Assembly (NCBI RefSeq): GCF_036588685.1
Contig: NC_086386.1
Span: 57,908,001-57,972,000, forward strand
Reading direction: 5' to 3'
Source of the DNA: Mytilus trossulus
Taxonomy: Eukaryota
DNA: 64,000 nt
Shown here piece after piece: positions 26,263 to 62,190 of this stretch; the stretch's first letter is position 1; each line of letters opens with the position of its first letter. A model generated the notes under the pieces. That model made no database searches and was not told the DNA's origin. It saw only the letters and a program-made list of their open reading frames with translations. The translations under genes and the position numbers were made by a program.

Positions 26263-27309
26263 TCTTAAATATATTCTTTATATTGCTATTTTTTATGCTG
26301 ATTAACTGTTTGATGCCCACGACGACTTCCAACATCATGTTTGAAGCGTAAATGGCGATGATAACATTAGCATTAATCCCGCTAACACTTTAAATCTCGT
26401 CACATTCTGTATGTATGTGCCTGTCCAAAGTCAGGAGCCTATAATACAGTGGTTGTCGTTTGTCTTTATGTTACATAATTGTTTTTCGTTCATTTTATAC
26501 ATAAATAAGCCGTTAGTTTTCTCGTTTAATGGTTTTACATTGTCATGTCGGGGCCATTTATAGCTGACTAATGCGGTATGGGCTTTGGTCATTGTTGAAG
26601 GCCGTATGGTGACCTTTTGTTGTTAATTTCTATGTCATTCTGGTTCCTTGTGGAGAGTTTTCTCATTGGCAATCATATCACATCTCCTTTTTTTTGTATA
26701 TAATGTCTTTAATACATGAATTAAGGGGAACAAAATACGAAGGAGTTTGAAATAACGTTATCGCAAAACTAAAGTTGAAATTCACCATTCATGTTAAAAT
26801 ACACAAAATAGCGATTACATGAAAAGACCAGTTAAAGTGAGTAAGTTATAACAGAAAAACAATAAAAAATGTATCAATGTTACAACTACGGTGCGTATTG
26901 CAATGTGTTTCTTTATTCTTCATTGGCTAGAGGTATAGGGGGAGGATTAAGATCTCACGAAACATGTTCAACCCGTCGCATGTTTGCGCCTATTACAAGC
27001 CAGGAGCCTTTGGCCTTTGTTAGTCTTGTATGTTTTTTTTAATTTAAGTTCATTTATATGTTTTGGAGTTTTATAGTGTGATGTCCATTTTTACTGAACT
27101 AGTACACAATTTTGTTTAGGGGCCAGCTGAGGACCACTTCCGGGTATGCGGGATTTTATTGTTGCGTTAAAGACAAAATGGTGTCCTTCAGCTGATGTCT
27201 ACTATTTGGTCGGGTTGCTGTCTCTTTGACATATTCTCCATTTCCATTCTCAATTTTACATGTACTTTGTAATTGTTTTGCGGTAATCAGTATTCTATTT
27301 TACAGATTA

Positions 27310-37313: not shown

Positions 37314-38217
37314 ACAACGAGGCTACAGACGATACTTGTATAGGAAGTTGAAAATGAAATCATAGAAACCAAAAGACCTATGTCGTTAGAAAGGATGATT
37401 AACAATTTTCTTCTGTCATCTTCTTGACTAATATCCTATCATTTCCCAATCAATGCGGCTTTTGCCAACCTGTTTGCTCTGTGGTGTCATGTACATGTAT
37501 GAGGGAGCATTCGATGATTTCTAACGTGATGACTTTTCTGTAAATCTTATAAATAGTGCTGAACATATTTGCTGTTTACGATTTGTTTTTATTTGCCATA
37601 GTTTCTGGAAAAAGCTAAATATGTCTTTTAATAACTCAAATAAGGGATCCACTGACTATCAAGCCGAAAGGTTTGCCTAAAATTGCTTACATCAACTTCA
37701 TTTTGAACTTTGTAGGATAATTGTCTCATCATGCTCATTGGCAAACATAACACAAAATCTGTATTTTCATTGGTATTGGAATCAGCAATATCAGTGTTGA
37801 CAACTGTCACTGCCTTTATTAAATGTTATACACAACAGCTCACATGGATTTTGCTTTTTCCACCTGCCCACCGTGGGCAGTCCACCCGTGCCCACTCTAC
37901 CTATAATCTCTTTTTTTGTAAAAATATGTATTGCAAATGCTAATCTGCTTTTTTCAAGTGATTGTACTTGAAAGTCTTCAGATAAAACAAAAGAAATTGC
38001 ATGCCCACTCCTATGAGTGTGCAGAGTGGACAAGGAAGAAATTTTGCCAACCCTGTGCCCACTCAACCGTTGACTGAAAACATCTGACCATAATTACGTT
38101 GAACAGTTGATAATCCTCCCTTGCATCCCTGTCAGGTATGCTCTAATTGGTTTAGTTTTTGAGATATAAAACAACAAGAATATGTCCATAGTACATAGAT
38201 GCACCATTCAAACTATT

Positions 38218-38334
38218 ATTTTCTATGTTCATTGGACCTTGAAATTGTTTTCTATGTTCATTGGACCTTGAAATTGTTTTCTATGTTCATTGGACCTTGA
38301 AATTGTTTTCTATGTTCACTGGACCTTGAAATTG
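38218..38334. repeat. 29-30-bp tandem repeat, 4 copies, inside a DINE-like fragment
   Basis: Unit TTTTCTATGTTCATTGGACCTTGAAATTG. Confidence 0.9.
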
Positions 38335-41300
38335 GGGCAAACACTTTATAATGGCCTTAAAATTAGAAAGATCATATCATAGGGACTAATTAGGTTCAAT
38401 TTGATTAGACTTTAACTTCATCAACCTTAAAAAAGAAGCCCAGTAATAATACATTCTAAACAAATTCAATGTTAACCAATTTATTTTGATTCTACTGGCA
38501 TGATTTTGTAATGCATGTACAATAAACTTATAAAATTGAGATATGTTCCTCCATAAATAAAACATTTAATAAATCTAGTAGTACCATACCTTTTGTGTTA
38601 CATAGTTTTGTCAAAAATAAATTTCAATTGTTAATAACAATCAATTTTGTCTAATTAGTTTTCATTTTAAAACTGATGTTTTCTAAAACCTGTTGAAAAA
38701 AAATTGTCATACAAAAAATGAAAATGGGAGACAACTCTAGGTTCTTGTTTTCCATTTTATCAGAAAATAACTAATTCAAATCTCTGATCATCCCATGATC
38801 ATACTGATATTCTCTGATAATCAAGATTTAATTTTAGATTTAGCAAGGGAAATTACTAGACATGCTAGATAGCATTGTGGAAAAAGTAACTGAAGCAAAT
38901 TTTGTTAATGTTGTACAATGATTTTTCCTGACTTTTTCTGTGTTAAAACATCATTTAACTATAAAAAATTCACAGAGGGCTGTTCCTGAATGGAAAGCAA
39001 ATTATCAAAAAAATAGTACCTCCGATCCCCTCCAATTCCTTCAACTTTGCACAAAAATAACAGTATCATTCTAGGTTACTAAAAATTAAATTCAGCCTTC
39101 AAGTTTTCCTTTGTTGGAGCAGCTATCATGTTCTTAACAGAAAATATATAAACATGATCAATCTGAATCTATTTATAAACTTTTCATTCTGATTCCAAAG
39201 TCTTCATTATCTGCATTGATAGGAATTTTCTCTTCAACAGTGCCACTTTATAGTCCATCCAGTTTCATCCTGATATAAATATTCTCCTTTTGGCAAATTT
39301 CCAGTAACATCATTTCGGTAATTTTCTAGAAAACTACCAACTCGGGGAAAAAAATTTTGCTTTACAATTTTTCATTGAATCAGTAATTCCTGTACAAAAG
39401 ATATCATAGTTCAAGGTCAGCCAAAGAATTACTATAGTATCATAACATATTGTTGATTTATATCTGAACAAATCTAATTCTGTTGTTCCAAGAAGCACAT
39501 CTTCTTCGCTATCATAAAAATATATGACGATCTTCTTTTTTGAGATCCCGATAGTACAAAAATGTACATGTAGTAGGAACCAAACAATGTCTAAGATTAT
39601 TTCTGTTTTCCTTGCGCTGGAGAAATGAGAAAAACAATTGATTGAGCTAGAACTTGTTCCTGATGACTAGATGTCTTTGTTTCTGGAGAGGACTCTGATG
39701 AAGATACTGTAGATGAGCCGACTTTAAAGTTATCATCTTCAACATTGGCCAAATGCACAGAAACATTGTTTATCAATATATCAGATTTTCCATGCCACCC
39801 ATCTATCCAACCTATAAAATAAAATTCAAATCAATAGACCACTTTTTGCATGTTTTAGGTATATGCTGCACCAGGAAAGTTCATTAATAATGCACCCTTT
39901 ATGAGGTTAGAAGGGTTCGTCTTGTATCTCTGCACTATTAAAATCTTCAATTGTCTTTGTGATCAAGATCATCATTATCATGATTATTCTGCATAATCAT
40001 GATAATGATGATCTTGATAATCTTGATAAACTAGAAATCGTGTTTTATCTAGTAGGTTTATAACAATTCCCTAATAACTGTAGTGCTGATTATCAATTCA
40101 GATAAATTAGTTTGCTGAATAATTAAAATGGAAATGTTAGAATGCAAATTTTATTAGATTTGGGCCAGAAGTGACCCAGTAGTATAAGACGAGAAGATTT
40201 TTGTATAAGTTAAGATGACATGGTACACACAGAAATGAGAAAGCTCAAAAGGGAAGGTCATGAAAGTACTGGTATATTTTTTGCTGTGTAAATTTGGAGA
40301 CATGTTTTATAAAGATTCACTGTCAAAAGGGCAACAAAACTTAAGGAAGGCTTTTCAAGGCATTAAAGATACGACAGGTACATGAAGGACAAATAAATCC
40401 ATATATTAATACACAAGTTTTGTTGTTGTTGACCTGTTATAATAAATCTTACCAAATGATGTAGCATCAAAATCACCATCTGCACTGTCACCATGTTCAC
40501 CAGTTTTGCATGGACAACTTAATGAATTTGGTTGGAATCTTAGATTATGATATGAATCATCAATTTTGTAACTTCCATCTACAGTCAGAGGTGATAACAA
40601 ATGCAGTGACACAATAACTGCCCACTCTGCGTCATCACAAGTTTCCTCCTCTAATGCAATATCATGATCTGCAAAAGAATTACACACAAATGTGACAATA
40701 TATACATTTGTACCCCATATCATCATGATTATCATGTTCATCAATATGACATGTATAAGAAATTGTGGTTTAATCATGAATATCTATTTATAATGGATTG
40801 GGAAACAAGTTATTGCAACGTATAAAATACATGTTATTGTCCCTTTCCACTTCCCCTTTAAGAAATAAAGGGTGTCTTTTACATTTTTAGGCAGTTAAGC
40901 TGCCTTATGCGAGCACCCTAGATTTGTGTTCTACTCAATAAATGCTGAAATACGTGCCATTGTCATTATTTAGCTGGATATTATATTTGTTATTTATAAC
41001 TAATAGTTGACAGTTATTTCATACTTTTTATTCTGGATAACAAAAAATATGACCAGAAAAACCTTAAATGGTTGTCGAATAACCCCAAACTTTTGAAGTT
41101 GTACATAAGAAGTAGAGCACATAACATGCATAAGGAATCCTTATATATATATAAATGTAGTTTATTATCCCCTGAGCTTTTGGCTAAGATGCCAAAGAAC
41201 AAATGTATGAAATATTTAACCGCAGAAAATCTCTAAAGATAGTTTAGACTTCCCAAATTGCAAAAAGTCGTAGGAATATTTTTTTGTCGTCAATACGCAA

Positions 41301-42219: not shown

Positions 42220-43114
42220 GGAAGCAGGACAAATCGCCCCACTGGCAAATCGCCCCACTTTTAAAAAATCACCCTAAACTGGTTTATCAACTCGCCCCAC
42301 TTGTATAAAGGGTTAAATCCCGTTAATTTTTCTCCTGCCAACTCGCCCCACTTAATGAAATAATATTATCCTAGATGAATATGAAAAATTCAGGTCTGCC
42401 AACTCGCCCCACATAACTAAAAAAAAAAATATACACAGAATACAAAAAAACGAAAATTTACTCAATCATTATTATTGATGTGGCATGACTCAACTTAATT
42501 CATCAGGTATTTTTTACTTTTCATAAGTGGGTCGAGTTAGCGCTAGCATTGCTCAATTTATCAGGATTTTTCTATTTTTCACTGGTTGGGCTAGTTGGCA
42601 TTCATGTCATAGAGAATACTGATACTCACTTCTTTATGCTTTATTTCAACAAAAAGAAAAGAACTACCATTATGTCATGTATGTATAGGTCAAAGAACTG
42701 TCTTCAACATGGAGCCTTTTTCACATCGAACAGTAAGCTACATGTATAAAGGGTCTCACGAATGACTAGTGTAAAACCATTCAAACGGGGAAAAAATGTG
42801 TATTGTTTTTTTAAAAGTGAGACAGGAACATACAGGACAAGTGGGGCAAGTTGGCATTACTAAATTCATCAGGATTTATCTATTTTTCAGAAGTGGGGCG
42901 AGATGGTAGACCATATAATATATCAGAGGGATTCTCTTTTTATAAATGAAGCAATATATCCAACCTATTTCCAATGGGATTTTATCCTTTTCATAAGTAA
43001 GGCGAGTTGGTAAACAAAAGTGGAGGGATTTTTTAGAAAGTGGGGCGAGTTGGTGAAAAAGTGGGGCGAGTAGGTGTGGGTAGATTTGCCAGTGGGGAGA
43101 TTTGTCATGGATTC
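42220..43114. mobile_element. Non-autonomous TIR element with repeated subterminal motif
   Basis: Left GGACAAATCGCCCCACTGGCAAAT..., right ...ATTTGCCAGTGGGGAGATTTGTCATGGATTC. Multiple CAACTCGCCCCAC on the left, inverted GTGGGGCGAGTTG on the right. No convincing TSD. Confidence 0.75.
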
Positions 43115-43348
43115 ATTTTTTCCAGGAAGGTGCTAAAGCAAAATTCTAATATAGCCTTCCAAGATGTACTAATTGAACATACAATGCAATGTATGCCTTA
43201 CCCTTGAGAAGATAATTTAGTAATTTTTCTAAAGCTTCCATTTGTTTCTCATCTTCTGGGACCTGTGGGTGCGGATCAAGGAACCTCTTCAAAATAAAAA
43301 CTCCATTTTGAAAAATTGACCCAGCTGCATAAATGCGGGCAAGAGGTT

Positions 43349-43653
43349 TGTAGTGTAATTGCCCCTTAGTTCTAGGGGTTTCCCCAACCTATCACAAGGG
43401 TACTGGTACATCACGGAGGGATCCGAAGGGACACATGACATGACGTAACAGTTGGGTACTTCCAGCCTCGTCCTCGATGACATCTCTCTTACCACGGAAC
43501 GAGCAAGGCAATGCGCCTGATATCTGGGGCTAGACGAGGTTAGCTGGGACTGACACCTTGTAGAAAGGTAAGGGCACTCTAACACTAAGCATAGCTTGTA
43601 TCAACCCCTCGGGTAACCATAGAGCTCAGCGAGACAGGCCAAATAACACTTTA
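43349..43653 (+). repeat. 5' LTR
   Basis: TGTAGTGTAATT...AATAACACTTTA; about 3 mismatches to the 3' LTR by eye. Confidence 0.96.
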
Positions 43654-43654
43654 C

Positions 43655-43673
43655 TGGTAGTTGCGGGTGGTTT
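43655..43673 (+). promoter_or_regulatory. Primer-binding site, imperfect match to the initiator tRNA-Met 3' end
   Basis: TGGTAGTTGCGGGTGGTTT, one base after the LTR; the metazoan tRNA-iMet complement is TGGTAGCAGAGGATGGTTT (15/19). Confidence 0.6.
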
Positions 43674-44133
43674 AAATTTTGGTCCTGTAGGGGATTGGAC
43701 GCCATTTTGGCATCACTCCAAAATTTTGAGTGCCTTCAGTCAAATCTAAAAATAAGTATTTTGTCTAAGGGAGACAAACTGGGTCCGGTGGTATACTTTC
43801 TAGGTGAAAGTCAGTCGTATTTGTATAGTTTTTGGGCTGAGCAAGGATTCGATAGTTACAAATCCTTGGGCTGAGGAAAAACTTTTTGAAAAGTTTGCTT
43901 TAGTGATAGCGAGATTTGGTCGCCATCTTGGATTATGTTTACAGATGTAAACAAACGGATGTAAACAAACACAAGAGCAGTTTGCTTTTATAGTGTTCCG
44001 TGTATATTTTATTTTTGACTTGAGTTTTTGTTGAATAAAAAAATATTGTTGATCCGTGTATAAATATAATTTTGTGAATTATATTGAATAAAGTGAAATA
44101 AATTTTTATAACTTTGTAAAGTACAAAGTCACT

Positions 44134-44831
44134 ATGCAGGGGTACATGATCAATATTAACACCTGTCCTAAGGTAATACTTACCTGCATACCTGGCATAG
44201 GGGAGGCCATAGCAGGAAGGATCATGGATATTAGGGCAAAAGGTATCCACATTGATAGAGATGTTTTGTTCCAAATTCCACACTTGAGAGTGACAGAAGG
44301 TATTCTGGGTATAATTGATTTTTCACGAAGACCAAGAGCTGAGCTCAGGGAAGCTGTCCGTGACGGAGCCTGTTCTGTGAGTATGTTGCCTCCAAAGCCT
44401 GATCATGTGATTGTTGATTGTGATTGTTGGAACCAGAGGAGTATCCTTGTTCAAGTTTTAAGGATACAGGTACTCAAGATGAGGTAGAATCATCTTGCTC
44501 AGAGGATGGAGCCTGCTCCAGTCTTGAATGGGACAAACATCGCCTGGAACAAATACAAAGTCGTTCTGAACATTTAACTATGTTAGACTAGTTACATTGT
44601 GAACCATCACAGGAGAGCCTTTCTTCAGAGAGTTTGAACTCAGACCTGAGTGTTTGTAGCAATGAGTATCATACTCAACCACCAAGGATCAACATGGTTG
44701 CGCACCCTCAACCAGACAGTCAACAGGACGGTGATGTCCCATATGACAGAATGTTCATACCGCTTAGCTAGAACTGGCATATTCAAAACCCTGTAGTCGA
44801 TCAACAGGAAGATTGCAACCATCAACAAGAG
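44134..44831 (+). pseudogene. Disrupted N-terminus of the Gag polyprotein with a helix-hairpin-helix (ComEA-like) domain
   Basis: ININTCPKVILTCIPGIGEAIAGRIMDIR is an HhH pattern. After a frameshift at the TGATTGT microduplication (about 44408-44430), the frame runs into ORF 44832 with only two TAG stops (44589, 44769). Confidence 0.75.
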
Positions 44832-47348
44832 GTGCAACAGACTCCGCCTAGATATAATAGCTCTGATTATGACCAACAACCAAGGTTCTTACATACACCT
44901 ACATCTGACCATGTTCACTTTTCACCAAGTGTACAACATGAGCACCACTATGTCGACCAATATCAACATGGCTTCAATAGTCTTCACCGACTGGAAGTCA
45001 ACAAGAGTCAACAAAGAGTGGAAATGCAACATAAAGTACAATGCCTACAACAACGGCTAGACCAGCTTCAACAAGGGGTCATTAACTATGCACAGCCTGT
45101 GCAACAACAACATCTAGCTGCAGCGCCGGCTTCTATACCTCTACAGCAGCTACAACAACAGGTTAGTGAAGTTGTTCATCAACAACCAAATTATCCAGAA
45201 CCAAGGTTTCAACCACCAAGTTCTGTACCAGAAGTTCAACAACATAAGATGATTGGTCACCCAACTTCTATGTATCAACCTCCTAGAGGTGAACCACCGC
45301 CACAAGCACCAACAAATTTAATGCCTTACAACCATCAATACATACCTGGTTTAACGTACCCAAGTTTGGGTCAGTCACAACCATTACACGTGCCTCAGTT
45401 ACCTATGCCTGGCACACAGCAGCAACCTCCACCATCAGGAGCACCTCAGCTGCATTACAACCAACCTTCAGCAAGACAGAAGGAATATAATAGTGATTAC
45501 TATGGGAGACAAGAAAGAAGTGATCCTAGACATAAATATATAGGTGATTCTGACATGTCAAATGTTTCAGCATACCGCCAGTCCAGAACAAAGCGAAGGT
45601 CAGAACCTGAGTACAACAGACCTCATAAGAATCAACAGCGTGATTTCTCACCTTTAAGAAGTGTAAGGAGTTTTCCATTACACCATAGTCGTTCAAATCC
45701 TAGAATGTCTAGAATGTCTAGTGACTCCCGATCAGAATCTGACACAGATGGTCAAAGTTCTGAAAGCAGTCAGGAAAGTAGACAAAAGGAGAAAATAGAG
45801 AAAAGACAATTTCTGTCCTCGATCCCGAAAACGCTCCGCTATAATGGGAAGGGCAACTGGAAAGCCTTTTATACCAAGTTTTCTAGTTATGCTAAAATGG
45901 CCGAGTGGACAGATAAACAAAAAAGGGAACAGCTCTGCTGGTGCCTAGATGATGCAGCCAGTGAGTATTACACCTTAATCCTAGAAAATAACAAAACAGC
46001 AAGTTTTTCTGATATTGTATCCAATATGAATAAGAGATTTGGTCATCAAGAATTGCCAGAAACCTCACAGGTTCAGTTCCAGACAAGTGCCCAAGGAGAA
46101 AAGGAGACCTTAGAGGAGTGGTCGGAAAGAGTGTTGACTCTCGCCACTAGAGCCTATAGCAGGTACAGTGAACAACTAATGACTGAACAGGCAATCATGA
46201 GGTTTTGTCAGGGTTGTAATGATACAGTTGCTGGAACAGAAGCTTGTATCTCTAAACCAAAGTCCATGGATGCAGCCTTGGATATGATTAGATGGTGTCA
46301 GCACACTAGGAAGGCTGTCAGTGCCATTCAGAAAACTAGCAAGGAGGAGTCTCTTTCAGAGAAGTCAGTTAACTCACCAGTAGTTCTTGGTGTAGGTAGC
46401 ACCAAGTCTAGTATGGATAATCGTCTCTCTCGCATAGAAGAACATATAAAGAAAATGATGTCAATAGTAACCAGTTTGGTTCAGGAACAATCAGCCAAAC
46501 ATGGAACCAGTCCTAGTTCTAGGTCACCTAATCAAGACAACATGTATTCTGATTATTCGCCTACTCGTAATTATGGTCGAGGGCGAGGGAATAACTCTGG
46601 CGACAGAAGATATACCAGACAGGGTTATTATAATAATGAATGCTTTAATTGTCACCAGCAAGGTCATTATATCAAAGACTGTCCAGAACTTTATGTACAA
46701 GAAACAGAAAGACAGACAGTACAGAAAGAGCCAACATCTCAACAAGTATCTTTTGATGAGAATAACATAGACAATTCTCATGAATCTGAAGGAGTAGTAT
46801 CTGGAATCAGTACAGTTAGATCACTAGGACCAGCCAAACTCTTTAGAGTTGAAGTATATATTGCGGGAAAGAAAGTACTCGCTCTAGTTGATTCAGGTTC
46901 TGAAGTAAGTATTCTTAAGGACACAATTTTTGACACTTCGGAGCCTAAGCCCTATGTTATCAGGGAGACTACCATGCATGGTGCTGGTACCAACATGACA
47001 ATGCCATGCAGGCTTTCTAGTCCTATAAAGTTTAAGATTGGAGAGATACAGTTCAATCAACAACTGTATGTAGCTCCAGTGTCATGTGATATGATACTGG
47101 GATGTGTCTTTTTCATGTATAATAGAGTTGTAATGAATGTAAGAGAACTAACATTAACTGTACAGAATAGGAACATGCCATTTATACTAGGAGATGAAAA
47201 CATGAACCTAATGTCAACGTTGTTCATGGAAAGAACACTTCAGATTCATCTTCAGATGAGAAACCCAGAACAGAAGGGTCAACACAAAGGTTCCCAGCCA
47301 GCAGGCAAAATGCTGAATTTCATCTTGAAACAGTCGTTCCTCAAGTAG
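44832..47348 (+). CDS. gag: Retrotransposon Gag (Q/P-rich, capsid-like, CCHC zinc knuckle) plus retropepsin-like aspartic protease
   Basis: YNGKGNWKAFYTKF...WTDKQKREQLCWCLDDAA (retrotransposon gag pattern), CFNCHQQGHYIKDC, VLALVDSGSEVSIL...DMILGC. Confidence 0.92.
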   Translation: MQQTPPRYNSSDYDQQPRFLHTPTSDHVHFSPSVQHEHHYVDQYQHGFNSLHRLEVNKSQQRVEMQHKVQCLQQRLDQLQQGVINYAQPVQQQHLAAAPASIPLQQLQQQVSEVVHQQPNYPEPRFQPPSSVPEVQQHKMIGHPTSMYQPPRGEPPPQAPTNLMPYNHQYIPGLTYPSLGQSQPLHVPQLPMPGTQQQPPPSGAPQLHYNQPSARQKEYNSDYYGRQERSDPRHKYIGDSDMSNVSAYRQSRTKRRSEPEYNRPHKNQQRDFSPLRSVRSFPLHHSRSNPRMSRMSSDSRSESDTDGQSSESSQESRQKEKIEKRQFLSSIPKTLRYNGKGNWKAFYTKFSSYAKMAEWTDKQKREQLCWCLDDAASEYYTLILENNKTASFSDIVSNMNKRFGHQELPETSQVQFQTSAQGEKETLEEWSERVLTLATRAYSRYSEQLMTEQAIMRFCQGCNDTVAGTEACISKPKSMDAALDMIRWCQHTRKAVSAIQKTSKEESLSEKSVNSPVVLGVGSTKSSMDNRLSRIEEHIKKMMSIVTSLVQEQSAKHGTSPSSRSPNQDNMYSDYSPTRNYGRGRGNNSGDRRYTRQGYYNNECFNCHQQGHYIKDCPELYVQETERQTVQKEPTSQQVSFDENNIDNSHESEGVVSGISTVRSLGPAKLFRVEVYIAGKKVLALVDSGSEVSILKDTIFDTSEPKPYVIRETTMHGAGTNMTMPCRLSSPIKFKIGEIQFNQQLYVAPVSCDMILGCVFFMYNRVVMNVRELTLTVQNRNMPFILGDENMNLMSTLFMERTLQIHLQMRNPEQKGQHKGSQPAGKMLNFILKQSFLK

Positions 47349-47362
47349 AGTCTAACCTAGCT

Positions 47363-48538
47363 ATGAGGGCCTCAACATCTACACAGGGATCTGAGCCTGA
47401 TCAATGTAGAGACAGTAGGGTTGACAAGGTAGAATCAAGAGAGAGCCTTGGGTTTTATACTTGTCCCAAAAGTGGAAAAAGGGAGAGGACTTGTGTTCAA
47501 AGTCCAACAGACCGTAAATGTCCTGTAAAGAACTGCCCAGTAGTGGTAGATAGAAGAGACGTAAAACGACATTGTTTTGAAGAACATCTTTCTGAAATTT
47601 TTCAGACATATCATTCCAAAAGACTGATGGAGGACAGAAGATTTCACCAACATAGAGCTTATGTGGTTATGCTCATAGCAAAATGGTTAACCGGGCAGGA
47701 AACAGGTACTGCCAAAGACTTGGTGAATTTCCTCAATGAGAAGTCTTTTGTGCCCCGTTCTACACATGTTTCAGGGATACAGATGCAAGTCCATCGTACA
47801 GTGTGTAAAGAGATGGGATGGACAGATTATTTTAGGTATAGTTTGAGACCGGTAAACAGCCCTGCTTGTTTACTCAATTGGAGAGTTCTTTCTTCAGTTC
47901 TACACTTTTTCAGCCCTGAACAACAAGATATGGTGGCCGAAGGATTTAGCTACAATCCTAGAAATCCTCCAGAACCTGAGGAACTTGCTGAGATGAATGC
48001 CAGTTTCTGGCCAGTGTTTGTTAACAAAGCTCAAGATGAGTCAGCAATTCCTCAAAAAGAAGGGGAGGAAGACAATGTTCAGTCTGAACAAGAAGGACGT
48101 ACCATAGTAATGGACGAAATAGAAGAAATTCACTATGAGAGTGAAAGTTTGAACACTGAAACATCTAGCAAAAAGAGAAAATTGCAGTCCAATATTGCTG
48201 ACAATGAAACAAATGCACACCATACTCTGAAGAATGAAACCGTACTTCTCCTAGGACGCCAAGTTTCACAACTAGCTGAATCCCAGGTAGAGCATTCTTC
48301 TTCACACCTCAAGTCGAGACAGAGTCCTCAAGTTCCAACAATTGTACTTATACAGTATGAGGGTTTGCAGTGTATGGCAAGGGTTAGTTCTATGGCAGAA
48401 CTGTACAATGTGGTTACTGAACGATTCCCTGAAAGTGGGAATGTTTCACTGATCTGTGAAGGAAGAGTTTTAGATGATAGTGTATGTTTTGACCTGTTAG
48501 GTCACCGTCCTCACATTGAAGTGAGGCGCCTTCAGTAA
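47363..48538 (+). CDS. Unknown retroelement protein in the pol position: C2H2-like motif, helical core, acidic linker, possible ubiquitin/PB1-like C-terminus
   Basis: 391 aa; CPVKNC..x8..VKRHCFEEH, PVNSPACLLNWR. No YxDD, RNase H or HHCC/DDE motifs. This frame is open from 47198. Confidence 0.8.
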   Translation: MRASTSTQGSEPDQCRDSRVDKVESRESLGFYTCPKSGKRERTCVQSPTDRKCPVKNCPVVVDRRDVKRHCFEEHLSEIFQTYHSKRLMEDRRFHQHRAYVVMLIAKWLTGQETGTAKDLVNFLNEKSFVPRSTHVSGIQMQVHRTVCKEMGWTDYFRYSLRPVNSPACLLNWRVLSSVLHFFSPEQQDMVAEGFSYNPRNPPEPEELAEMNASFWPVFVNKAQDESAIPQKEGEEDNVQSEQEGRTIVMDEIEEIHYESESLNTETSSKKRKLQSNIADNETNAHHTLKNETVLLLGRQVSQLAESQVEHSSSHLKSRQSPQVPTIVLIQYEGLQCMARVSSMAELYNVVTERFPESGNVSLICEGRVLDDSVCFDLLGHRPHIEVRRLQ

Positions 48539-49485
48539 CAGTTTTCCCAGTTTGGGATTTAACACCTTTGAAATTGTGTTGAGTGTGAGCCATTGTTGTA
48601 CTTTCTGTGATTTTTATTAGTTTTTTTTTGCTTGACCCTGTTTTTATTTAGATTTTGGTGATACTAACTATTAAAGTAGTAAAATAGTTAAATGCATCCT
48701 TATATAGAGGCACTATATATGTGGGATTTTTGACAAGAGTCAAATTATTTATGGTCATGTACATCCTTCCTAGTTTTGGGGTTATAGACCTATAGTATTT
48801 AGTCGGTTGTAAACTATGTACAAAGTTATACATGTACATGTTAGTTAGTTTCATTTGGAAATTCAGGGTGGTATTAATGAACTTGTCATTTAGACATTGA
48901 GATAGTTTTATATTTTGAAGCATGATTTTTGTCAGTTAAGGTCTGAACAGTTGATACATGTATATGTATGTGAACATTACACAGAGTCAGGGTTTTTAGA
49001 CGTGTTGAGCACGCAGTTTATTGTCTTGTAATGAGACCCATGTCCAGGACTGTATAAGTTGGAATAGCATATGGCTATGGTCGACCTGGAGTTCGGCTGT
49101 TATTTGTCCTGAAGAACCTGTTGAGGTTGGCACCTAGACTTGCTACATGTCCCTTCCTAATTATGTTTTTATTTCTTTTTTTCAATTTTGCCCCTTTAAT
49201 AGTTTTACTGCTATAACTAGGAGATTACAATTATACTGACATCTGCAGGAGGAAGGGACTTGTAAAGTTTGTCTGAGGCTTGACCAAACTGTTAATCTTA
49301 GAGTAATTAAGATTGACATTTATTGATAAGAATTTCAGATAACAGTTGGGAAGTGAAACTTGATATTCCAGTGTTGTGCAAATACTGTTATTTATTTTCA
49401 TTGTATAACTTACTAGAAAGATAAGGTCACTGAACTTATACATATGATCAAACATCACATCATTGTCAGAGTTTATGTTGTTCCA

Positions 49486-52400
49486 ATGGCAGAAAGTTCT
49501 ACTCCAAAAAAGTTTTTCAGATTTATAAAATTTACTCCGACAACTAAAAAAACTCTGTGTGTAATTTGTGGAAACAGAATTGAAAAAAGTGATTACAGGA
49601 GAAAATTATTTCATGGCAGCATCAAATCTGAATACTGTCTTCTTATTGAAAAACATCTGGAAATAAATATTACAGAAGAGACACATGCAGATACTGCATG
49701 TAGAAAATGTGTTAGAGAACTGCAAAAAATTGACAATGTTTTCACAACATTTAAATCGTCTTATCAGAATACTTTGGCAAAACTACGTGAAACACATGGA
49801 CATAACTCGGTTTCATTCAAAAGACAATTTTCCGAGGATGGTAGTGCAACTGTTAATAGTAGGAAATCATTGTTTCCTAGAGATGAGGAACAAGAAGATG
49901 ACTCCGAATTCAATATTGACACTGAAACTGACACAGAACTGAAGGTATGTTTGTAAAGTACATTATTGTAAAAAAAAATAAGAAAGGAATGACCTTTCAT
50001 AAGAAACATGTATCATCATCCTATAACCAACAGAAACGAGCAAAGAAATTGTACAATCTCATTTTGATTTTTTTATATATTTTTTTTCCTCCAGTGGCAA
50101 ATATTTCATGTGTTTCTAGATTAAAACTATGATTCAAGCATAGTTATTTTCAGTTTTGAATACAAAATTTTTAAAAAGCATAATTCTTGAGTAGCATATT
50201 CATATATAAAGACTATTAATTATATCTTTATGTATATGTATTTTTGTTTAATTTATTTTTTTATACACTTATTCATACATAAAATATTGAAATTGAACAT
50301 GAAACAGTAACTAATAAAAACATTAGTTTAATGAGGAAACAATCATTTTTGAGAGGGGAAATAGTGGGTATAATTATTCAAGTTTCTGAAGAACAAATAA
50401 TTTTTTTATGAAAACTTTTGCATGGGAACAATTACTTAATTTTAGCTTACAGTAAATTTTTTTTTGGGGAAAACAAAGTGTCAAATTTGTGTTTGTCCCA
50501 ATTCTTAGTGGAAACAAACTGGTTTTTATTTTACGACCCCTATCGATTAAAGATGATTTTCTCTCTGGAAAACTAGAATCTGGCAAATTTTACCCCCCCC
50601 CCCCTCCCCAGAAAAAAAAGAAACACACACACAAAATCAACAGTTTATACCAATGCTATTATTAAATTAAATAAAACATTACTTGTATGTCAAAGTTTTA
50701 GACATGATAATCTTTGCTCATTGTTGAAGGCGGTATGGTAACCTGAAATTATTAATTTCTGTGTCATTTTGGTCTCTTGATAAAAGTTGTCTCATCTGCA
50801 ATCATAACACATCTCTCTTTTTTTGTTTTTAACAAAGACATTCTTTAGGTTATAATATGCCGTGGATTAAAAAATGAAATACGGTGCATGCCTGCGAAGC
50901 ACTTTCCAATTCTTGATGCCTTAACCTCTGGTGATATGCCTACAGTTGGTTCGTTAATTTAAAAAAATCCAGATTTGCAAGATGTTTTCCAAGAGACAGT
51001 GTTTGATACCATCAAAGGAGAAATTAAAACTTTGGCACTAAGAGAGAATAACTCAATTTTACGTAACCATGACAAGATAAAGTCTCTTACATTTGCCAGA
51101 GTTATAGATGAATGGAGACAGAAAGCTCCTACTTTCTTAAAATCACTTGAAGCAGCGGTAGCAAACCCAGCACATCAGTTTAATAAGTATAAAAAGGGCG
51201 AAGCTTTAATACCAGGTATAGTGACTGCTGGCTGTAAACTTTTGACCCTGTACAGCAAAGATTTAAATGCTTTTCAACATTTTAATAGCTATATTTTGTG
51301 GAAAGGTGGTTGCAAAAAGTCTGCATTTTCTCGACTGAATGCCACATACGACTGCTTAAGCTACCAATCAACGCTAAGTTTGGCAGACAAGTTAGGGATT
51401 GACTGGGACAATGATCTTGTTGCCATGCAAGAACTAGTAACAACTGAAACGTCACATGAATTGGTGTTACTTCAGAACATACAGATGATCAAAGAGTCTA
51501 TTGATTTGGTGAACGGAGATGCTGATACAATGGTACAACGAATTCTTGAACTTTCTAATGCGGAAAATGATTTGCATCAGTACAGAGATTTAATGCACCC
51601 TGGCTTTTACTTTGTAGGAGATAATGTAGATATGCGTACAAAAGTCAGGAATATGACAATCTATAACCAACACAAAGACCATCATATGTACCAAATATGT
51701 GCCTATGAAAACAGGATTTCAGGGAACCACCTAGACAACACTGTTGCCAAAGGAGATGCAAATACAGTGCCCTTCACTACTTTCATACCGAGTCAGTTAG
51801 AATTGGACAGTATAGCTAGTGACTTCACTTTCTTAGTAGCGAAAATATGGAGTCAGCATATTCCACACTTCAACATATTTGCACCAGTCCTTCCCGAGTA
51901 TATTGAGCATCAGTACATGAAAGAAATGAAGCAAAAAACAGCAAGAGTAAGTTGATATTGTATGTGTTATTAATGTGATCCATTATTATTAAAAATAGTC
52001 AGTGGCAAATATTCCATGCATTTTACAAACAAGGACAAGGATGTAACATAAACATTTATATAACTTTGATCAATCTTTGACTTTGGTTCACAAAGGAAAA
52101 AGGCTACCCTATATGTATGTGTTTAAAAATGGCTACTTTCAAATCCTGCATCTTAATTAAGTCTTCGAAAATTACTGTTTGTTATGGTGTCCTTCATTTT
52201 CATGATTTTATCTTGATATTTAGCAAAAAACCTATTTATACAACATATTTCAATAAACCCACTATAAGTTTAAGTTTTGTTGACATATGTTAAAAATCAA
52301 GCAATAGCATATATAAAAATTAGTCGAAAAGATTATAACCCTAAAAAGTAATAATATGCTTAACTGGGCTCATTGTTGAAGGCCGTAGAGTAACCTATAG

Positions 52401-54670
52401 TTGTTAATTTCTAAGTCATTTGGTCTCTTGTGGAGTGTTGTTTCATTGACAATCATAACCGTATCTTTTTTTTTTATATTAAAAAGTATTAATACTTAAG
52501 TACAAAACATATAACTTTTTACTATACATGCATATAAGAATTATATTTGATTGTGTTTAATTTCATGTACCTCATTTTGCTTTTAATAGATAAATATGGG
52601 AGTTTTGATGAAAAGTGAGCAATACAATGAAGATATGACAGACATTTGTGAATTTATGCACAAGTATGTACCTGGACACAATGAAACAGATGACTGGACA
52701 AAACAGCCACAAAAAGTCTTGAGTGGAGGAGACTATTTAACTTTTGAGAGACACAAACAGGCACAGTCATCCAAACGAAATGGTCGAACTCCAACAAAAA
52801 GATTAGAGGGACTGGTACCTAAAATGGAAGAATTTCACAACCAGGGAGAGTTGCTAAAGGTAATGTCTACAATACTCTAAGATGCATGATTTTTTATTAG
52901 TTGCAAGTGGCTTTGAACTAGCTGTCAGATAACTGAGAGTACTCCCAGAAATGTTTCTAGTGTCTTTTTGTTGTCTAGATGTAGAAGTACCTGGCCACGT
53001 CCAATTGTATTTTTGTCCATCTGATGAGTTAAGCCTTTTTTAACTGATTTTTATAGTTCGTTCTTATCTTGTACTGTTATACCACTGTCCCAGGTTAGGA
53101 GGAGGGTTGGGATCCGCTTTAACCCTGCCATATTATTTATGCATGTGCCTGTCCCAAGTCAGGAGCCTGTAATTTAGTGGTTGTCGTTTGTTTATGTGTT
53201 ACATATGTGTTTTGTTTTACATTGTCATATCGGGGCCTTTTATAGCTGACTATGCGGTATGGGCTTTGCATGCTCATTGTTGAAGGCTGTACAGTGACCT
53301 ATAGTTGTTAATGTCTGTGTCATTTTGGTCTCTTGTGGACAGTTGTCTCATTGGTAATCATACCACATCTTTTTTTTTTATATCTACATAAGAAAGATAA
53401 TTTGAAACAGATTATGTCGTATGTTGATATTTATTTTTAAATATATTTTTTCAGAAAAAACACTTTTATTTTTTGAGAAATGCATATTTTTTCATTGTTA
53501 AACCCGTAATCTGTCTGATTGCTTCAATTTCAGGTCATTTGGAAGTTGTTGTACTCAACCTCGTCAGCTAGAGACCAGGGAACTCTGTATGCAGCACGCA
53601 ATACCATAAATGCAAGAAATGTTACCCAAGATCCAGCCGATGATTTTTATGCAGCTTCTGATCTTGTTGAGAAAGTTACCACAGCATATATTATAACAGG
53701 TGGTCTTACTCACTTTGGAATGGAAAGCATAGACTCTTTACCCTGTAAAAATGTGTATGAGGGTGCAGTTGGGAATACAAATGAAATGAAGGAATATATT
53801 TTTGATCAGGCACGCTCGTTTGTTAAGACATTCACATTGCCAGAGATACCTAAACTTCCAAAATATGGGCCAAATTGCAATACATATCATTGTAGATACT
53901 GTGGAAAAAAGTACAAACAACCACATTCCCTCAGAAAACATGAATCCTCCATTCATGATCATTATGATCCTCTTTTTGCTAAGGAAAAAGTTTCGAGTGG
54001 CAAGGATAACGAAAACGAATCTGATGGAGTTAGTGCGTACACAAAGTTGGTTTTAACATTGGGTTTATTAAGAATGGATCACAACGATGCAATTCATATG
54101 GGTGATGGAACAAGGATGTTAAGAATTGACCAGTTCCTGGTTTTGTACTATAAATATTGTCATTGTACAAAATACGCCTTTGGTACCTTGGAAACTATAG
54201 CCCAAACTGAAGTTTTGTTAACAGAACGCCAGGCACACAGACTGATATGGAACAGAACTGTAAACCATAAGGGGGACGCAAATACAAATCATCCAAATGA
54301 TTTAGATGTTGAACATTGTAATAAGGTGTTTAAAGATTCTGCCCATAGATACAGAGGTGTTTTTACTGAGAAAGTGGTTTCGAGAGTCAGTAAGAGTGCT
54401 ATGAAAGTCCACGAAATTATCAAACAGTTTGACAAAATGTGTAAAGTGCATGTTCAATCAGGACGACATAAAACATGTGACAAGGAAATAGACATTTTAA
54501 CTTTGGTCAGACAATTCCAGGCATGTAATTTATTCGATTTCATTCCTGGCCGATCACATTATGCCTATCCAAACATGAAGGAAAATCCCCTTACAGAGCT
54601 AGACATGGAGTTTGTTGGAGACTGGATTGGTGCTAGTTTAAAAAAGTTTCATAACAAACATTTCTATTAG
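49486..54670 (+). pseudogene. Academ-type (DUF6589-like) transposase, 4 exons, about 987 codons, one in-frame stop
   Basis: Exons 49486-49944, 50849-51946, 52590-52859, 53534-54670, all phase 0 GT-AG. N-terminal CxxC...CxxC; motifs GDNVD, GGDYLTFER, EEFH, C2H2 finger CRYCGKKY...LRKHESSIH, GDGTR, KYA, NRTVN..G....N.P.DLDVEHCN. TAA at 50960-50962. Confidence 0.85.
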
Positions 54671-54688
54671 CAGAACAATTTTATTGTT

Positions 54689-56786
54689 TCAAAACATTTC
54701 ATCATCTGAACTGTAAATGACTTGTGGTTTTCTTGTTGACGATTCTAAAACATCACTGTCACTATCACTTGAAAACATATCATCGAGTTCTGTGATGTCA
54801 TTGTCATCGTTATCATCACTATCATCATTGTCCTCATTTGACATAATAGCTGTGTTTATTTTAGGGAGAACTTGATTGCAAGTGTTTGTACATACACATT
54901 CATCTTCACAACTGCATGCACATTTGCACGAGAGACGACAAATATCACAACAAAAGTGAGGTATATGTGCATGTTCAACAATTGTTTTAAATATATTTAG
55001 AATAAATGCCCATCTGCAGGTTTTAGATTTAACATATTCTTTCATAGATGGGAATATATTTTGACTTCCTAAACATCTTTTGTAAGTTAGTAGAATAGCA
55101 TTGCATTGTTGCGAAAGCTCCCTACCATCACGACCAGATTCTTGTACATAGTCATCAATATCATTAGCTGGACCATAATGTATAACTGTATCCACACCTT
55201 TTACATCTAGACCCATGCTAAAAGATGTTGAACATAGAACAACTCTAATATTACCATTTGGATTCATGTAGGATGTACAAATAAAATCTTTTACGTCATC
55301 ATCGGTTTTCATGTGGAACATGTCAAAAAGGCGATTTCTGTTATCATTTGGTCCTCCCTCTATGAAGTCTATGTAAGCATCATGCTTAAGGGATGTTTCA
55401 AGATATTCGTATACGTCTGCAATGTGTTTGATTTGCCTAAAGAATATAATCATCCTTGAAGTGGCCTGCTTATATCCTCTTAATAAATTTACTAACCATC
55501 TAAAATTGGTGCAAATATCATCTGAAGGTAAATTATGTACCCAGTATGTCACATTCTTTTTGTCAGGATTTACCATAATCTCAGAGCAGTTATCCATACA
55601 AAGTTGCTTTTTAATGACAGCTTTGGTTTCCTCTGTAGCTGTTGCTGTTAGAGCCACTACTGGTACATGACCCCCAACAAGTGAACGAATTTCGTCAAGT
55701 CGGCCATAACAGGGTCTATATGCCAATTTCTTCTTCTTTTTATCTGGAAGCCCACTGAAAAAAAATAAAATTAATTAATCATATTGCAATATAAATCTGC
55801 ATAGGTCTCATAAAAATGCTTTAGCTTTACAAAGAAGTATTTCATAAGAAAAATTATGTAAGCACCATAGAAAACATATTTATATAATCTTAATTATTGT
55901 AGATATCCAACTGTCCAGTAGCAAATATTTCATACATCTTTCAAAACATCACAATATGAATTGAAAGTTTTTAATTTGACACCATTGGCAGAATAATCTT
56001 TCATAATAGTAACAGAAATATTCAATTAAAAGGGTGATTAATATTAAAAGTAAAATTAAATGAGAATGTTTTGAATAAATAAACATTAAATAGTTAGTGC
56101 ATGTACAGATATATATTATATATACATTTATAAATATATGATGTTCTTTTGTATGCATGTACTATTTTCAAGATATACATATTTATTCTTATGTATGTCA
56201 TGTATGTTATATCTTATGTTAGAGCGATTCAGATTATTATTATTAGTATTATACTTTTTTTGTTTGTTATATGTACAAAAATAAATACTTACAACTTTTT
56301 TATGCAGTGAGCTTCATCTACAAATACTGTCTTGATAAAATTTTTCTTTGCCAAATCCAACAGTAATTTTCTTTCGTGTCCAATAAGTGACTCTGGACTG
56401 GAGAAAATAATGTCAATTTTTCCTTCCTTCACATCTCCTAAGGAAAGATTTGTTAGGCTGTCTTCAAAATTAGATGGTGAGGTAATGTCCTTCAAATATA
56501 CTGCTTTAATCCCTTTTCTATTCAATGCTTGAGTCTGTGTTCGCATTAAAGATGTTAGAGGCGAAATAACAAGTACAATGCACATATCATTCTTCTGTAA
56601 ATATTTAAATACAAAAGGTGCTATTTCAAAAGTTAGTGATTTGCCACTTCCAGTTGGTGAACAAAAAAATACATCTTTGCCTGCCAAAAAGCTTTCTACA
56701 ACTTTTCTCTGGTTAATTTTGATTTCAGTAAATGATAACTTTTGTAATCCAAAATCTATTGCAGCAGATATGACATCTGTATCCAT
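54689..56786 (-). CDS. RecQ-like SF2 helicase of AcademH, 2 exons, 519 aa
   Basis: Exons 56786-56293 and 55754-54689 join as VDEAHCIKKF|GLP. Motifs PTGSGKS, VISPLTSLM, DEAH, ALTATA, STSFSMGLD, QESGRDGR; Cys-rich CCDIC...CxCxC; acidic tail. Confidence 0.92.
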
Positions 56787-57353
56787 TTTGATGTTGAAAT
56801 CATAAGAAAAGTAAAATTGTAATCTACTTGAGATAAAATATGGGAGAACAGCATGGGATATATACACATGACAGCTTAATTATCTATTATCAACAGATGT
56901 GAAATTATAACCTCTTACCGACCAGTATCTGGTCGGTAAAAAATGTTATTATACAAGTCCCTTTCTCCAAGGGCAATCAGTAGGCTAGCACTTATCAGTA
57001 AACATATAAATTAGTGAGAGAAAAATAATAGAAAGGGAATTGAAGCAAGTCTAGTTGGCACCCTGTGGCAACTCTGGTGTGTAAATTGTTGGGAATTTGG
57101 TACTCTATAGATAAGATAGCTGTTCAGAGCTCGATTTTCATATGTTTATTTTTACATGGGTAATTAAATTTTTTTTTTCCTTGGGAAATATTAAGTTTTG
57201 TCAATTTTCCCCTTATCCAGGATTAAGGGGGGTGGATACTTAGGATACCCTGTGTCATGGTTTAATTAGTAAAAGACGTTGCCAGTTTTCTCCTTGGGAT
57301 TTTTTTGTAAGATTATACAGTCGTTTTTGTCGGAACTGTAGTTCCTCCTTTTT

Positions 57354-57367
57354 AAGATGGAGGGGGG
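57354..57367 (+). promoter_or_regulatory. Polypurine tract
   Basis: AAGATGGAGGGGGG directly abutting the TG of the 3' LTR. Confidence 0.85.
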
Positions 57368-57672
57368 TGTAGTGTAATTGCCCCTTAGTTCTAGGGGTTT
57401 CCCCAACCTATCACAAGGGTACTGGTACATCACAAAGGGATCCGAAGGGACACATGACATGACGTAACAGTTGGGTACTTCCAGCCTCGTCCTCGATGAC
57501 ATCTCTCTTACCACGGAACGAGCAAGGCAATGCGCCTGATATCTGGGGCTAGACGAGGTTAGCTGGGACTGACACCTTGTAGGAAGGTAAGGGCACTCTA
57601 ACACTAAGCATAGCTTGTATCAACCCCTCGGGTAACCATAGAGCTCAGCGAGACAGGCCAAATAACACTTTA
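57368..57672 (+). repeat. 3' LTR
   Basis: Direct repeat of 43349-43653. Confidence 0.96.
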
Positions 57673-58899
57673 GGTTTTTCATAATTCCTGTATTTTTCAA
57701 ACAATTGCACCTCACAAGATGCACGGGAGAATTCCTCACTCAGAAGGGCATTTGTCTGCAGTATTTTTAATGTACGAAATACCATATCTGACGATCCACG
57801 ACATAACGATATGTATGCTTCTTCCAATAAATCTTTTTCAATTTTCTTTTTTAAAAAATCTTTAAAGAATGACCCATAGTCATATGTCTTTTGTCGTTTT
57901 GCACTGGTGTGTGCTCCTTCTGCCGACATTTTTAAATGTTTGAGCGAGCTGTCACTAAAAGTATTCAGCTAACTCAGTAACTGCTATAAAGACACTTGAA
58001 GTTCATTAGTTGAGGGATCACTTAAATAATCTTCGAGGTTCAGGCTCTCGTTTTGGCAGGGGAATGTAAGTAAGGGGGAGGGAAACCAATGATGTCTGGT
58101 TTCTGGATACATCAACGTACTTCCGGTCACTCGAACCAGTGGTCTCGGCCCAAAGATTACGCTCGTACCTTTTGGTGTATACATGCGTAAAGCAAATATA
58201 TATCCAGATGAAATATCATTCGGTGGCAAAAGGTTACAGAATGTTTTGCCAGATTTTTTTTCCGCAGGAAAAAATGTTATTGGGAAATATTTTCCATTGC
58301 CATGAAAATTAAAAAAAATCCGGGAAGTTAAAATATAAATTGTTAAAAAAAAAAAATCTTTGCTATAAATACCAAGGATTTGTATAGTAAGATCTTAAAA
58401 AAACTTGCTAATATTATACTAAGGACTAATATTAGTGTATTTGTATATCAATATTTTAGAGTATAATATATATATATATTATAGTCGGAAAAAATATTCA
58501 CAGATTATGATTAAAAATAATATTCTGAATCATGACTTTTTAAAGAAATATCATAGTTTAAAAGACAATTATAATGAAACAGATGAAACAACACCAGAAG
58601 TAATTTCGCATATATTAATTGTGAAATAATATCTTAATCAATAAAAAATAAGGAAAGTGAAATACAGCTAAGAAAAAGAGTTGTTTTCCGAGGGCCTGCT
58701 AAGAAATTTCAGAACTCAGTACTAATAAATTAGTAATTTTTTAAAAAAAACAAAGGTTTTTAAAAGAGTTATATGATGTACATATACAATTGTTCAGTGA
58801 AATTTAAGTTGAGGATTAAAAAGATTGAGACATCTTTACTTTGAATTCCAGCTTTTAAACGTTGTGAATCATCTTAATGACGAGGTCAAGTATATCAGA

Positions 58900-60754: not shown

Positions 60755-62190
60755 AAGTATTCATTCATGACAGGGTTACCCGAGGTAACCCCAATAATAA
60801 CAACAAATACAAACATTTAACTCAAGTCAACTGAGGTAACTTTATATATACATCACATAAACAATACAAATCTATGAAGTCCTACATTTTAAATTAAGAA
60901 ATTGTGTAATTAAAATATAAATGTATACACTACCAAAGTATCTACTTAGAATTATCTCATAACAGGGTAACCTGAGATAACCTAAACAATAACAGCAAAT
61001 ACAACCTATTTTACTCAAGTTAATTCAGATCACCTTTACAAATACATCACATACACAATATAATTTCAATGAATTCCTACATTAAAAAAGAAGAAGTCGG
61101 TTTATTACAGCATAAATGCATATACTAGCAAAATATCTACTAAGTATTCTGTCACGACAGGGTTACCTCTGGTAACCCATAAAATAGCAACAAGTATTAT
61201 CCATTCATTTCAAGTTAACTTATGTCACTTATCCGATATATCACATAAACATATGAAGTCCTACATGTAAAATAAAGATTTTTTTTGATTACAACATAAA
61301 TGTTTACACTAGCAAACCATCTAATAAGCATTCTCCATAACATGGGTACCTGAGGTAACCCCAGACATAATTACAAATATAACCCACTTAGCTCAAGTAA
61401 ACTGAGGTCACCTTTACATGTACATCACGTAAACAATACAACTTTCATGAAGTCCTACATTTAAAATAAAGAAGTTTGTTTATTACAATAAATGTAAACA
61501 CTAGCAAGGTATCTACGAAGTATTCATTCATGACAGGGTTACCTGAGGTAACCCCAGTAATATCAATAAATTTAACCCATTTAACTCAAGTTAACTCAGG
61601 TAACATTTATATATATATACCTCGCATAAACAATACAAATCTATGAAGTCCTACATTTTAAATTAAGAAATTGTGTAATTACAGCATAAATGCATATACC
61701 AGCAAAGTATCTACGAAGTACTCTTTCATAACACGATTACCTCAAGTAACCCTAAAAATAACAACAAGTATTATCCATTCAAATTAAGTTAACTTAAGTC
61801 GCCTTTCCCAAATATCATATAAACAATACACATCTATAAAGTCCAACATTAAAAGGTAAATGGTTTATTACAACTTAAATGTATACACTAGCAAGATATC
61901 TACGACGTATTCTTACATGACAGGGTTACCTTAGGTAACCATAACAATAACAATAAAGATAACCCTTTTAACTCAAGTTAACTAAGGTCACCTTTAAACA
62001 TATATACATCACTTAAACAATACAAATCTATGAAGTCTTACATTTTAAATTAAGAAATTGTGTTATTAAAATATAAATGTATACACTAGCAAAGTATCTA
62101 CTAAGAATTCTTTCATAACAGGGTTACATGAGGTAACCCAAACAATAACAGCAAATACAACCTATTTAACTCAAGTTAATTCAGATCACC
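60755..62190. repeat. Satellite-like array, about 190-bp unit, 7-8 diverged copies with an internal palindrome
   Basis: Anchor CATGACAGGGTTACCTGAGGTAACCC recurs at about 60766, 60958, 61154, 61336, 61529, 61727, 61916 and 62114. Confidence 0.9.

Follow-up and report, generated by a model that had tools for sequence, protein, structure and literature searches.

In a stretch of 64,000 nucleotides from Mytilus trossulus (contig NC_086386.1, positions 57,908,001 to 57,972,000 of the forward strand; hereafter the window), we find a long terminal repeat (LTR) retrotransposon at window positions 43349-57672 that carries a Gag-protease gene and lacks pol, that is, reverse transcriptase (RT), RNase H and integrase. 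We consider it probable that this element is one copy from a Mytilus family of non-autonomous LTR retrotransposons without pol, and that this family belongs to a Ty3/gypsy-type lineage, was derived by loss of pol and is mobilised by a helper. The evidence that carries this account is the structure of the element, the lack of pol in the window, the existence of pol-less sisters in three Mytilus species, and an integration event that left a target-site duplication.

The termini of the element are well defined. A blastn self-comparison of the window yields a pair of direct LTRs of 305 bp each (43349-43653 and 57368-57672), of which 302 positions are identical (99.0%), and no further LTR copy is present in the window. 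The three differences are located at 43415, 43416 and 43564. The 5' LTR starts with TGTAGTG and ends with CACTTTA. By direct reading, AGGTT flanks the element on both sides, on the left at 43344-43348 and on the right at 57672-57676, where it shares the last base of the LTR; if the final A is assigned to the LTR, the duplication reads GGTT (43345-43348 and 57673-57676). The element thus combines the direct LTRs and the short target-site duplication that characterise LTR retrotransposons. It also carries the two signals used for priming. The TGG-initiated 16-mer TGGTAGTTGCGGGTGG at 43655-43670, one base past the 5' LTR, resembles a primer binding site (PBS), and the tract AAGATGGAGGGGGG at 57354-57367, with 13 purines among its 14 nucleotides, abuts the 3' LTR as a polypurine tract. 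All of these features are read on the plus strand. Shortly upstream of the insertion site, at 42491-43008, a 48-nt motif occurs four times, with 69-77% likeness to the reference copy.

The LTRs are 14,019 bp apart and the whole element spans 14.3 kb. This large spacing is caused by a DNA transposon with a 9-bp duplication that has inserted into the 3' untranslated part of the element. A perfect 9-bp direct repeat, GTTGGCACC, is found at 49126-49134 and 57053-57061 and brackets a unit of 7918 bp (49135-57052), the ends of which are imperfect terminal inverted repeats (TIRs) starting with TAGACTTGCT. Insert ends at 49124 and 57064, as suggested by a 36-nt inverted repeat, were dropped in favour of 49135 and 57052, which give the perfect duplication. 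Together with its duplication, the nested transposon occupies 49126-57061 (no strand assigned); it is foreign to the retroelement design. When the insert and one copy of the duplication are subtracted, the LTR element measures 6397 bp. An initial annotation of this DNA had described LTRs of about 99% identity with intact PBS, polypurine tract and target-site duplication, all of which we can confirm, in an element of about 6.4 kb with a remainder of about 0.9 kb. The latter figures hold once the nested transposon is subtracted, and do not hold for the element as it stands.

The coding part of the element is a single gene on the plus strand. It is read in frame 1 from 44134, changes frame between 44424 and 44427 and then continues in the frame of 44832. 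In-frame TAG codons are found at 44589-44591 and 44769-44771, a second frame change follows at about 47197-47204, and the terminal stop is located at 48536-48538. The gene therefore appears as three open reading frame (ORF) pieces, 44134-44487, 44427-47348 and 47198-48538, the last of which is entered after the second frame change. In tblastn comparisons, the M. edulis sisters P0193 and P0194, which are 94-97% identical, are open at all four places, and we conclude for this reason that the four breaks are lesions of the window copy. With two stops and two frame changes this copy is dead, and its gene was analysed piecewise or with an X placed where it breaks. We also considered a programmed -1 frameshift at the junction between the protease and the C-terminal part, whose frame is -1 relative to Gag-protease, and rejected it, as all sisters are single-frame there.

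The encoded polyprotein contains, in this order, an HhH domain, Q/P- and S/R-rich linkers, a capsid, a CCHC knuckle, a DSG protease, a domain that we call zinc-finger/NSPA, an acidic linker and a ubiquitin-like (UBL) tail. Within the first ORF piece, which is also covered by tblastn with sisters, Pfam recognises HHH_3 at about 44146-44280 with an E value of 6.9e-6; in relatives the match reaches E 7e-9 and passes the curated cut-off. The second piece, aligned by tblastn with P0149, P0193, P0194 and P0201, contains the two linkers, the capsid at about 45888-46217 (PNMA and Retrotrans_gag, about 1e-6), the CCHC knuckle at about 46638-46688 (zf-CCHC) and the aspartic protease with its D-S-G active site at about 46839-47111 (RVP). 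The third piece starts with a linker, followed by the zinc-finger/NSPA domain at about 47450-48007, the acidic linker and the ubiquitin-like tail at about 48335-48535.

For the 446-codon C-terminal part, the sole Pfam signal is a weak match to DUF4729. AlphaFold2, run with a family alignment, predicts residues 85-270 of this part with a predicted local distance difference test (pLDDT) score above 90, and with 94.4 if the segment is folded alone. The model shows a beta-beta-alpha zinc finger with the conserved pattern C-x4-C ... H-x4-H and a helical domain with a conserved N-S-P...W-R pattern. No relative of this domain came up in Foldseek searches of PDB and BFVD or when PDB sequences were searched with a profile. 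The last 67 residues (380-446) are modelled as a ubiquitin-like beta-grasp with pLDDT of about 80-88, and Foldseek matches them to ubiquitin as well as to the ubiquilin UBL, SUMO and ISG15; for the latter three the probability is 1.00 and the target-normalised template modelling scores are 0.55-0.73. The tail has the ubiquitin-like fold, defined by a beta-beta-alpha-beta-beta...beta topology as in ubiquitin or SUMO; the C-terminal Gly-Gly is absent. The reading of three ORFs as one frame through repair of two TAGs (44589, 44769) and two frameshifts, the order of HhH, linkers, capsid, CCHC and DSG protease, and the suggestion of a C2H2-like/NSPA domain with a beta-grasp-like tail, all proposed in the initial annotation, are borne out by the open sisters, by Pfam and by the AlphaFold2 models, respectively.

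No part of the element resembles pol. Apart from the genes of the nested transposon, no ORF between the LTRs gives a Pfam match to RT, RNase H or integrase. The non-coding stretches of the element are only 480, 587 and 292 bp long, which is too short for pol, and contain no ORFs of note. The second and third of these are the two plus-strand pieces of the 3' untranslated part, at 48539-49125 and 57062-57353, neither of which has similarity to pol. For tblastn against the whole window, the closest pol-bearing relatives supplied probes from the post-protease part, from RT, from RNase H and from integrase, none of which gave a match below an E value of about 1. Pfam, stretch lengths and tblastn thus agree with the earlier statement that RT and integrase have left no trace. 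An autonomous LTR retrotransposon encodes its own RT, RNase H and integrase, and the window element does not. The intact duplication and the near-identical LTRs show an insertion of the integrase type, and for an element without integrase this implies help in trans.

A word-indexed search, together with a complete HMMER scan, recovered many gene models from Mytilus that contain these parts. The window proteins are 92-100% identical to gene models of M. edulis. Moreover, in 13 gene models (P0001, P0002, P0011, P0012, P0017, P0019, P0150, P0157, P0172, P0194, P0196, P0198 and P0201), drawn from M. edulis, M. galloprovincialis and M. coruscus, the protease continues into the C-terminal part at a junction that is contiguous in the window DNA, with 60-97% identity. 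One of them, P0201 (NCBI RefSeq, 1239 amino acids), starts in the Q/P-S/R linker, contains capsid, CCHC, protease, zinc-finger/NSPA domain and acidic linker, and reaches the end of the UBL unbroken and with no pol. Copies of the family are numerous, dispersed over different contigs, diverged and partly fragmentary. Identity among sisters amounts to 90.6% for the zinc-finger/NSPA domain, 87.5% for the capsid, 87% for the UBL, 81% for the protease and 73-79% for the linkers. Such uneven conservation from domain to domain, observed at the protein level, is as expected from selection on the protein and not from uniform decay.

These comparisons indicate a pol-less multi-copy family rather than a one-off deletion. 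Pol-bearing relatives exist, and a single internal deletion in an ordinary Ty3/gypsy copy, or a chimera of the assembly, could be imagined as the source of the window element. A single deletion, named in the initial annotation as the outcome that would overturn its reading, is contradicted by the recurrence of the same protease-to-C junction in the 13 gene models of three species, and the matching duplication that flanks both sides of the 14.3-kb unit argues against a chimera. We regard either origin as having next to no likelihood.

A capsid-like Gag followed by an aspartic protease, with no RT or integrase, is also found in the PEG10, RTL1 and PNMA family genes, which are domesticated Gag-protease genes with lost LTRs and fixed loci. 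The Pfam matches to PNMA and Retrotrans_gag, the many annotated models, RefSeq among them, and the domain-wise conservation would suit domestication in the host, as in the PEG10, RTL or PNMA gene families, in place of a mobile element. The window element differs from such genes in its fresh LTRs, its duplication and its membership of a dispersed multi-copy family. The window copy has LTRs, duplication, PBS, polypurine tract and four breaks, and its many relatives lie diverged and fragmentary on different contigs, which makes domestication a highly improbable explanation. As an observation on the gene models themselves, the pairs P0193/P0198 and P0194/P0196, adjacent or gapped, each divide one element copy where a copy-specific frame change occurs close to the beginning of the capsid. 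Fragments of this retroelement family account for dozens of Mytilus proteins annotated as 'CCHC-type domain-containing' or 'uncharacterized'.

A search seeded with the distant member P0164 reaches relatives that carry pol. P0182 and P0183 contain CCHC, protease, RVT_1 and RT_RNaseH, and P0181 contains RNase H and Integrase_H2C2. In P0204 (1909 amino acids), we find HhH, linkers, capsid pieces, CCHC-protease, a post-protease segment with the N-terminus of RT, the end of RNase H, Integrase_H2C2 and, after a gap of about 110 residues, the zinc-finger/NSPA domain. P0206, P0205 and P0214 show the same layout, and a similar order is seen in P0178 (1799 amino acids), P0180 and P0186, the first and last of which terminate in a UBL. 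The P0204-type gene models lack the RT core, the larger part of RNase H and the catalytic core of integrase. A graded deletion series is not claimed from these models, since they skip disrupted stretches.

Because the subfamilies with pol remnants carry the C-terminal module downstream of the integrase zinc finger, the module must have been linked to the lineage at this place before pol was lost. Most likely, as judged from the relatives, the window family goes back to a pol-bearing lineage in which the HhH-Gag and the C-terminal module were already in place, lost RT, RNase H and integrase, and was then amplified. The window element itself has no RT, and its assignment to a Ty3/gypsy-type lineage is suggested by relatives that share Gag and protease and contain RVT_1, RT_RNaseH(_2) and Integrase_H2C2. 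Two statements of the initial annotation lose their support here, namely that an unknown domain stands in place of RT, RNase H and integrase and that the element is not a simple deletion derivative: in P0204, P0206, P0205, P0214, P0178, P0180 and P0186 the same module is found behind pol segments. The helper-dependent satellite that it proposed stands in so far as a pol-less multi-copy family and help in trans are concerned, and finds no support where it denied a deletion.

The module is not restricted to retroelements. Homologues of the zinc-finger/NSPA domain fall into 135 representative clusters at E <= 1e-3. Residues 85-270 of the C-terminal part are homologous to the N-terminal zinc-finger/NSPA domain of invertebrate TatD_DNase proteins, which have a weak DUF4729 link as well, with phmmer E values down to 1e-52 outside the family, and both sides share the conserved C-x4-C ... 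H-x4-H and N-S-P ... W-R motifs. Of the 45 longer homologues scanned, 30 have TatD_DNase behind the zinc-finger/NSPA domain, as have 21 of the 126 members of a broader set; CIDE-N takes this place in two homologues and PHD in one. TatD_DNase (PF01026) itself is absent from the window protein, and the common part is the N-terminal companion domain only. Instead of the nuclease, the window element has the acidic linker and the ubiquitin-like domain. The same holds for P0023, P0026, P0027 and P0028, the nearest relatives outside retroelements, which are stand-alone proteins of 425-578 amino acids with zinc-finger/NSPA domain and UBL, and for L001 (ENA ERZ887851, 1743 bp), the sole contig from a metagenome scan. 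The stand-alone ORF of L001 combines the zinc-finger/NSPA domain with a UBL tail and shows about 80% likeness to the C-terminal part of the Mytilus model P0162. A polypyrimidine run with AG stands directly before it and an in-frame stop lies upstream, which gives it the look of a downstream exon, either in a cellular gene or in a spliced transcript. A scan of viral contigs gave no match. On the basis of these homologies, the zinc-finger/NSPA and UBL module is common property of host-type genes and of the retroelement lineage.

This distribution bears on a stronger form of the satellite proposal, according to which the element was never a plain deletion product and gained nucleic-acid-binding or effector modules in the place of pol, for its propagation or for use against the host. 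The family is indeed pol-less, multi-copy and diverged, the zinc-finger/NSPA domain is its best-conserved part, and the homology of the module to host-type proteins, both TatD-linked and stand-alone with zinc-finger/NSPA and UBL, makes capture of a host gene possible. That related subfamilies have the module behind segments of RT, RNase H and the integrase zinc finger argues, however, against a gain in place of pol, and no effector activity is indicated by catalytic motifs or by a structural match. We therefore consider this form of the proposal unlikely and retain the derivation by pol loss. A related idea, which we put forward as speculation with little weight, is that the module is host-derived, stemming from the family that fronts invertebrate TatD/CIDE-N nucleases, and serves as a nuclease-less decoy or tether in a capsid-making satellite that steals the Gag-Pol of its helper. 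If true, the module would blunt a DNA-degrading defence or steer integration, and the capsid would be kept matched to that of the helper (92-100% identity).

The capsid deserves attention in the pol-loss account, too. Over the region 45807-46331, the window capsid and that of P0180 agree at 92% identity, and against the capsid fragments of P0204, P0206 and P0214 the identity is 94-100%. In the same subfamily comparison (P0180 and the P0204 group), identity is 36-43% for the protease, 42-48% for the zinc-finger/NSPA domain and 70-76% for HhH. This mosaic may reflect either a much stronger constraint on the capsid or exchange between subfamilies by recombination. Both readings would fit a Gag that needs to co-assemble with the Gag-Pol of a relative.

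A cycle for the family can be proposed on these grounds. Transcription from the 5' LTR would produce an RNA that encodes the polyprotein, the protease would free the Gag parts, and the element's own Gag would package its RNA and form joint particles with the Gag-Pol of an autonomous relative. The RT of the helper would then use the PBS and the polypurine tract of the element, and the helper integrase would use its LTR ends. HhH and the zinc-finger/NSPA domain are plausible binders of nucleic acid or chromatin, with the UBL as a possible handle for protein interaction. Since the zinc-finger/NSPA and UBL module of relatives follows the integrase zinc finger, it may resemble the targeting domains of other Ty3/gypsy integrases.

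Several points weigh against this account. Among the gene models, no complete and unbroken sister of about 1470 codons was seen. The evidence for the family and for its helper consists of protein-level gene models, and the architectures with pol remnants are taken from models that split or skip at copy-specific frame changes, as P0193 and P0194 do relative to the window. The P0204-type loci may be either autonomous helpers or further deletion forms. For the PBS TGGTAGTTGCGGGTGG, no tRNA partner was matched, and ARAGORN found no tRNA gene within the window. The weakest part of the account is the function of the module: that zinc-finger/NSPA and UBL form an accessory or targeting part directed to nucleic acid or chromatin is probable by analogy with their domain neighbours, which are the basis for this assignment.

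Helper-dependent, non-autonomous LTR elements are a known general type, represented by LARD, TRIM, BARE-2 and ETn/MusD. Among described classes, the nearest are the TR-GAG elements of plants, which are shorter than 4 kb and have a single ORF that encodes only Gag (PMC4350172). Similar to these, the window element has kept LTRs, PBS, polypurine tract, duplication and gag, lacks RT and integrase and is presumably mobilised by a related autonomous element (PMC4350172). In contrast to them, it resides in an animal, is 6.4 kb long, has kept the protease and carries an N-terminal HhH as well as zinc-finger/NSPA and UBL domains. In size, content and host, it falls outside the definition of TR-GAG. 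Ty3/gypsy elements that have a domain after integrase resemble the window element in the CCHC Gag and the D-S/T-G protease, and its related subfamilies likewise have an accessory domain behind the integrase zinc finger. Chromoviruses, which are Ty3/gypsy elements (Metaviridae) with a chromodomain after integrase, are the example of this design. Membership of Ty3/gypsy is defined by RT phylogeny and by the order PR-RT-RH-IN. The accessory domain is not a chromodomain in our case, and since RT, RNase H and integrase are missing from the window element, an RT-based classification is impossible. Troyka elements (PMC12440569) were considered as a home and rejected, because they have CG..CG termini and 3-bp duplications, whereas the LTRs here are TG-initiated and the duplication is 4-5 bp. 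In searches of full-text papers, neither the family nor an HhH-Gag nor the zinc-finger/NSPA domain turned up as described before; curation in Repbase and Dfam lay outside the scope of these searches.

The nested DNA transposon carries a zf-AD-like ORF and a protein with DUF6589 and C2H2 that is divided over three ORF pieces; a RecQ-family helicase is encoded on the minus strand. TIRs, duplications of 9-10 bp and a helicase gene, besides an Academ transposase, are features of the AcademH lineage of Academ DNA transposons (PMC10045372 for the duplication). With its TIRs, its 9-bp duplication and its helicase, the nested unit is a candidate member of the lineage as summarised there (PMC10045372), and if it belongs to AcademH, DUF6589 could represent the transposase domain of Academ. 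Four copies of a dispersed repeat, each about 120 bp long, are found at 26586-26694, 50715-50837, 52368-52486 and 53272-53383. The last three copies lie within the nested transposon, one upstream of each DUF6589 ORF piece, in intron-like gaps of about 0.6-1.0 kb. Here we see either three insertions of a small interspersed element or an intronic element that recurs. Elsewhere in the window, an unbroken HSP70 gene of 633 codons is encoded on the minus strand at 21506-23407 (Pfam HSP70, E 5e-251). Tandem arrays occupy 12157-12606, 13975-14539, 38215-38359 and 60844-62190, with periods of about 37, 41, 29 and 190 bp, respectively. An Rfam search of the window gave no match.

Non-autonomous LTR elements that make capsid and protease have been documented mainly in plants, and the Mytilus family offers a diverged, multi-copy example from animals. 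It also brings to light two protein features for which we found no description, an HhH domain at the N-terminus of Gag and a confidently folded zinc-finger/helical domain that is common to many invertebrate TatD nucleases. For the annotation of Mytilus genomes, dozens of gene models labelled 'CCHC-type' or 'uncharacterized' are explained as pieces of one element family. Beyond that, the family represents a tractable case of hyper-parasitism among retroelements, in particular with a capsid that is nearly identical to that of a pol-linked relative.

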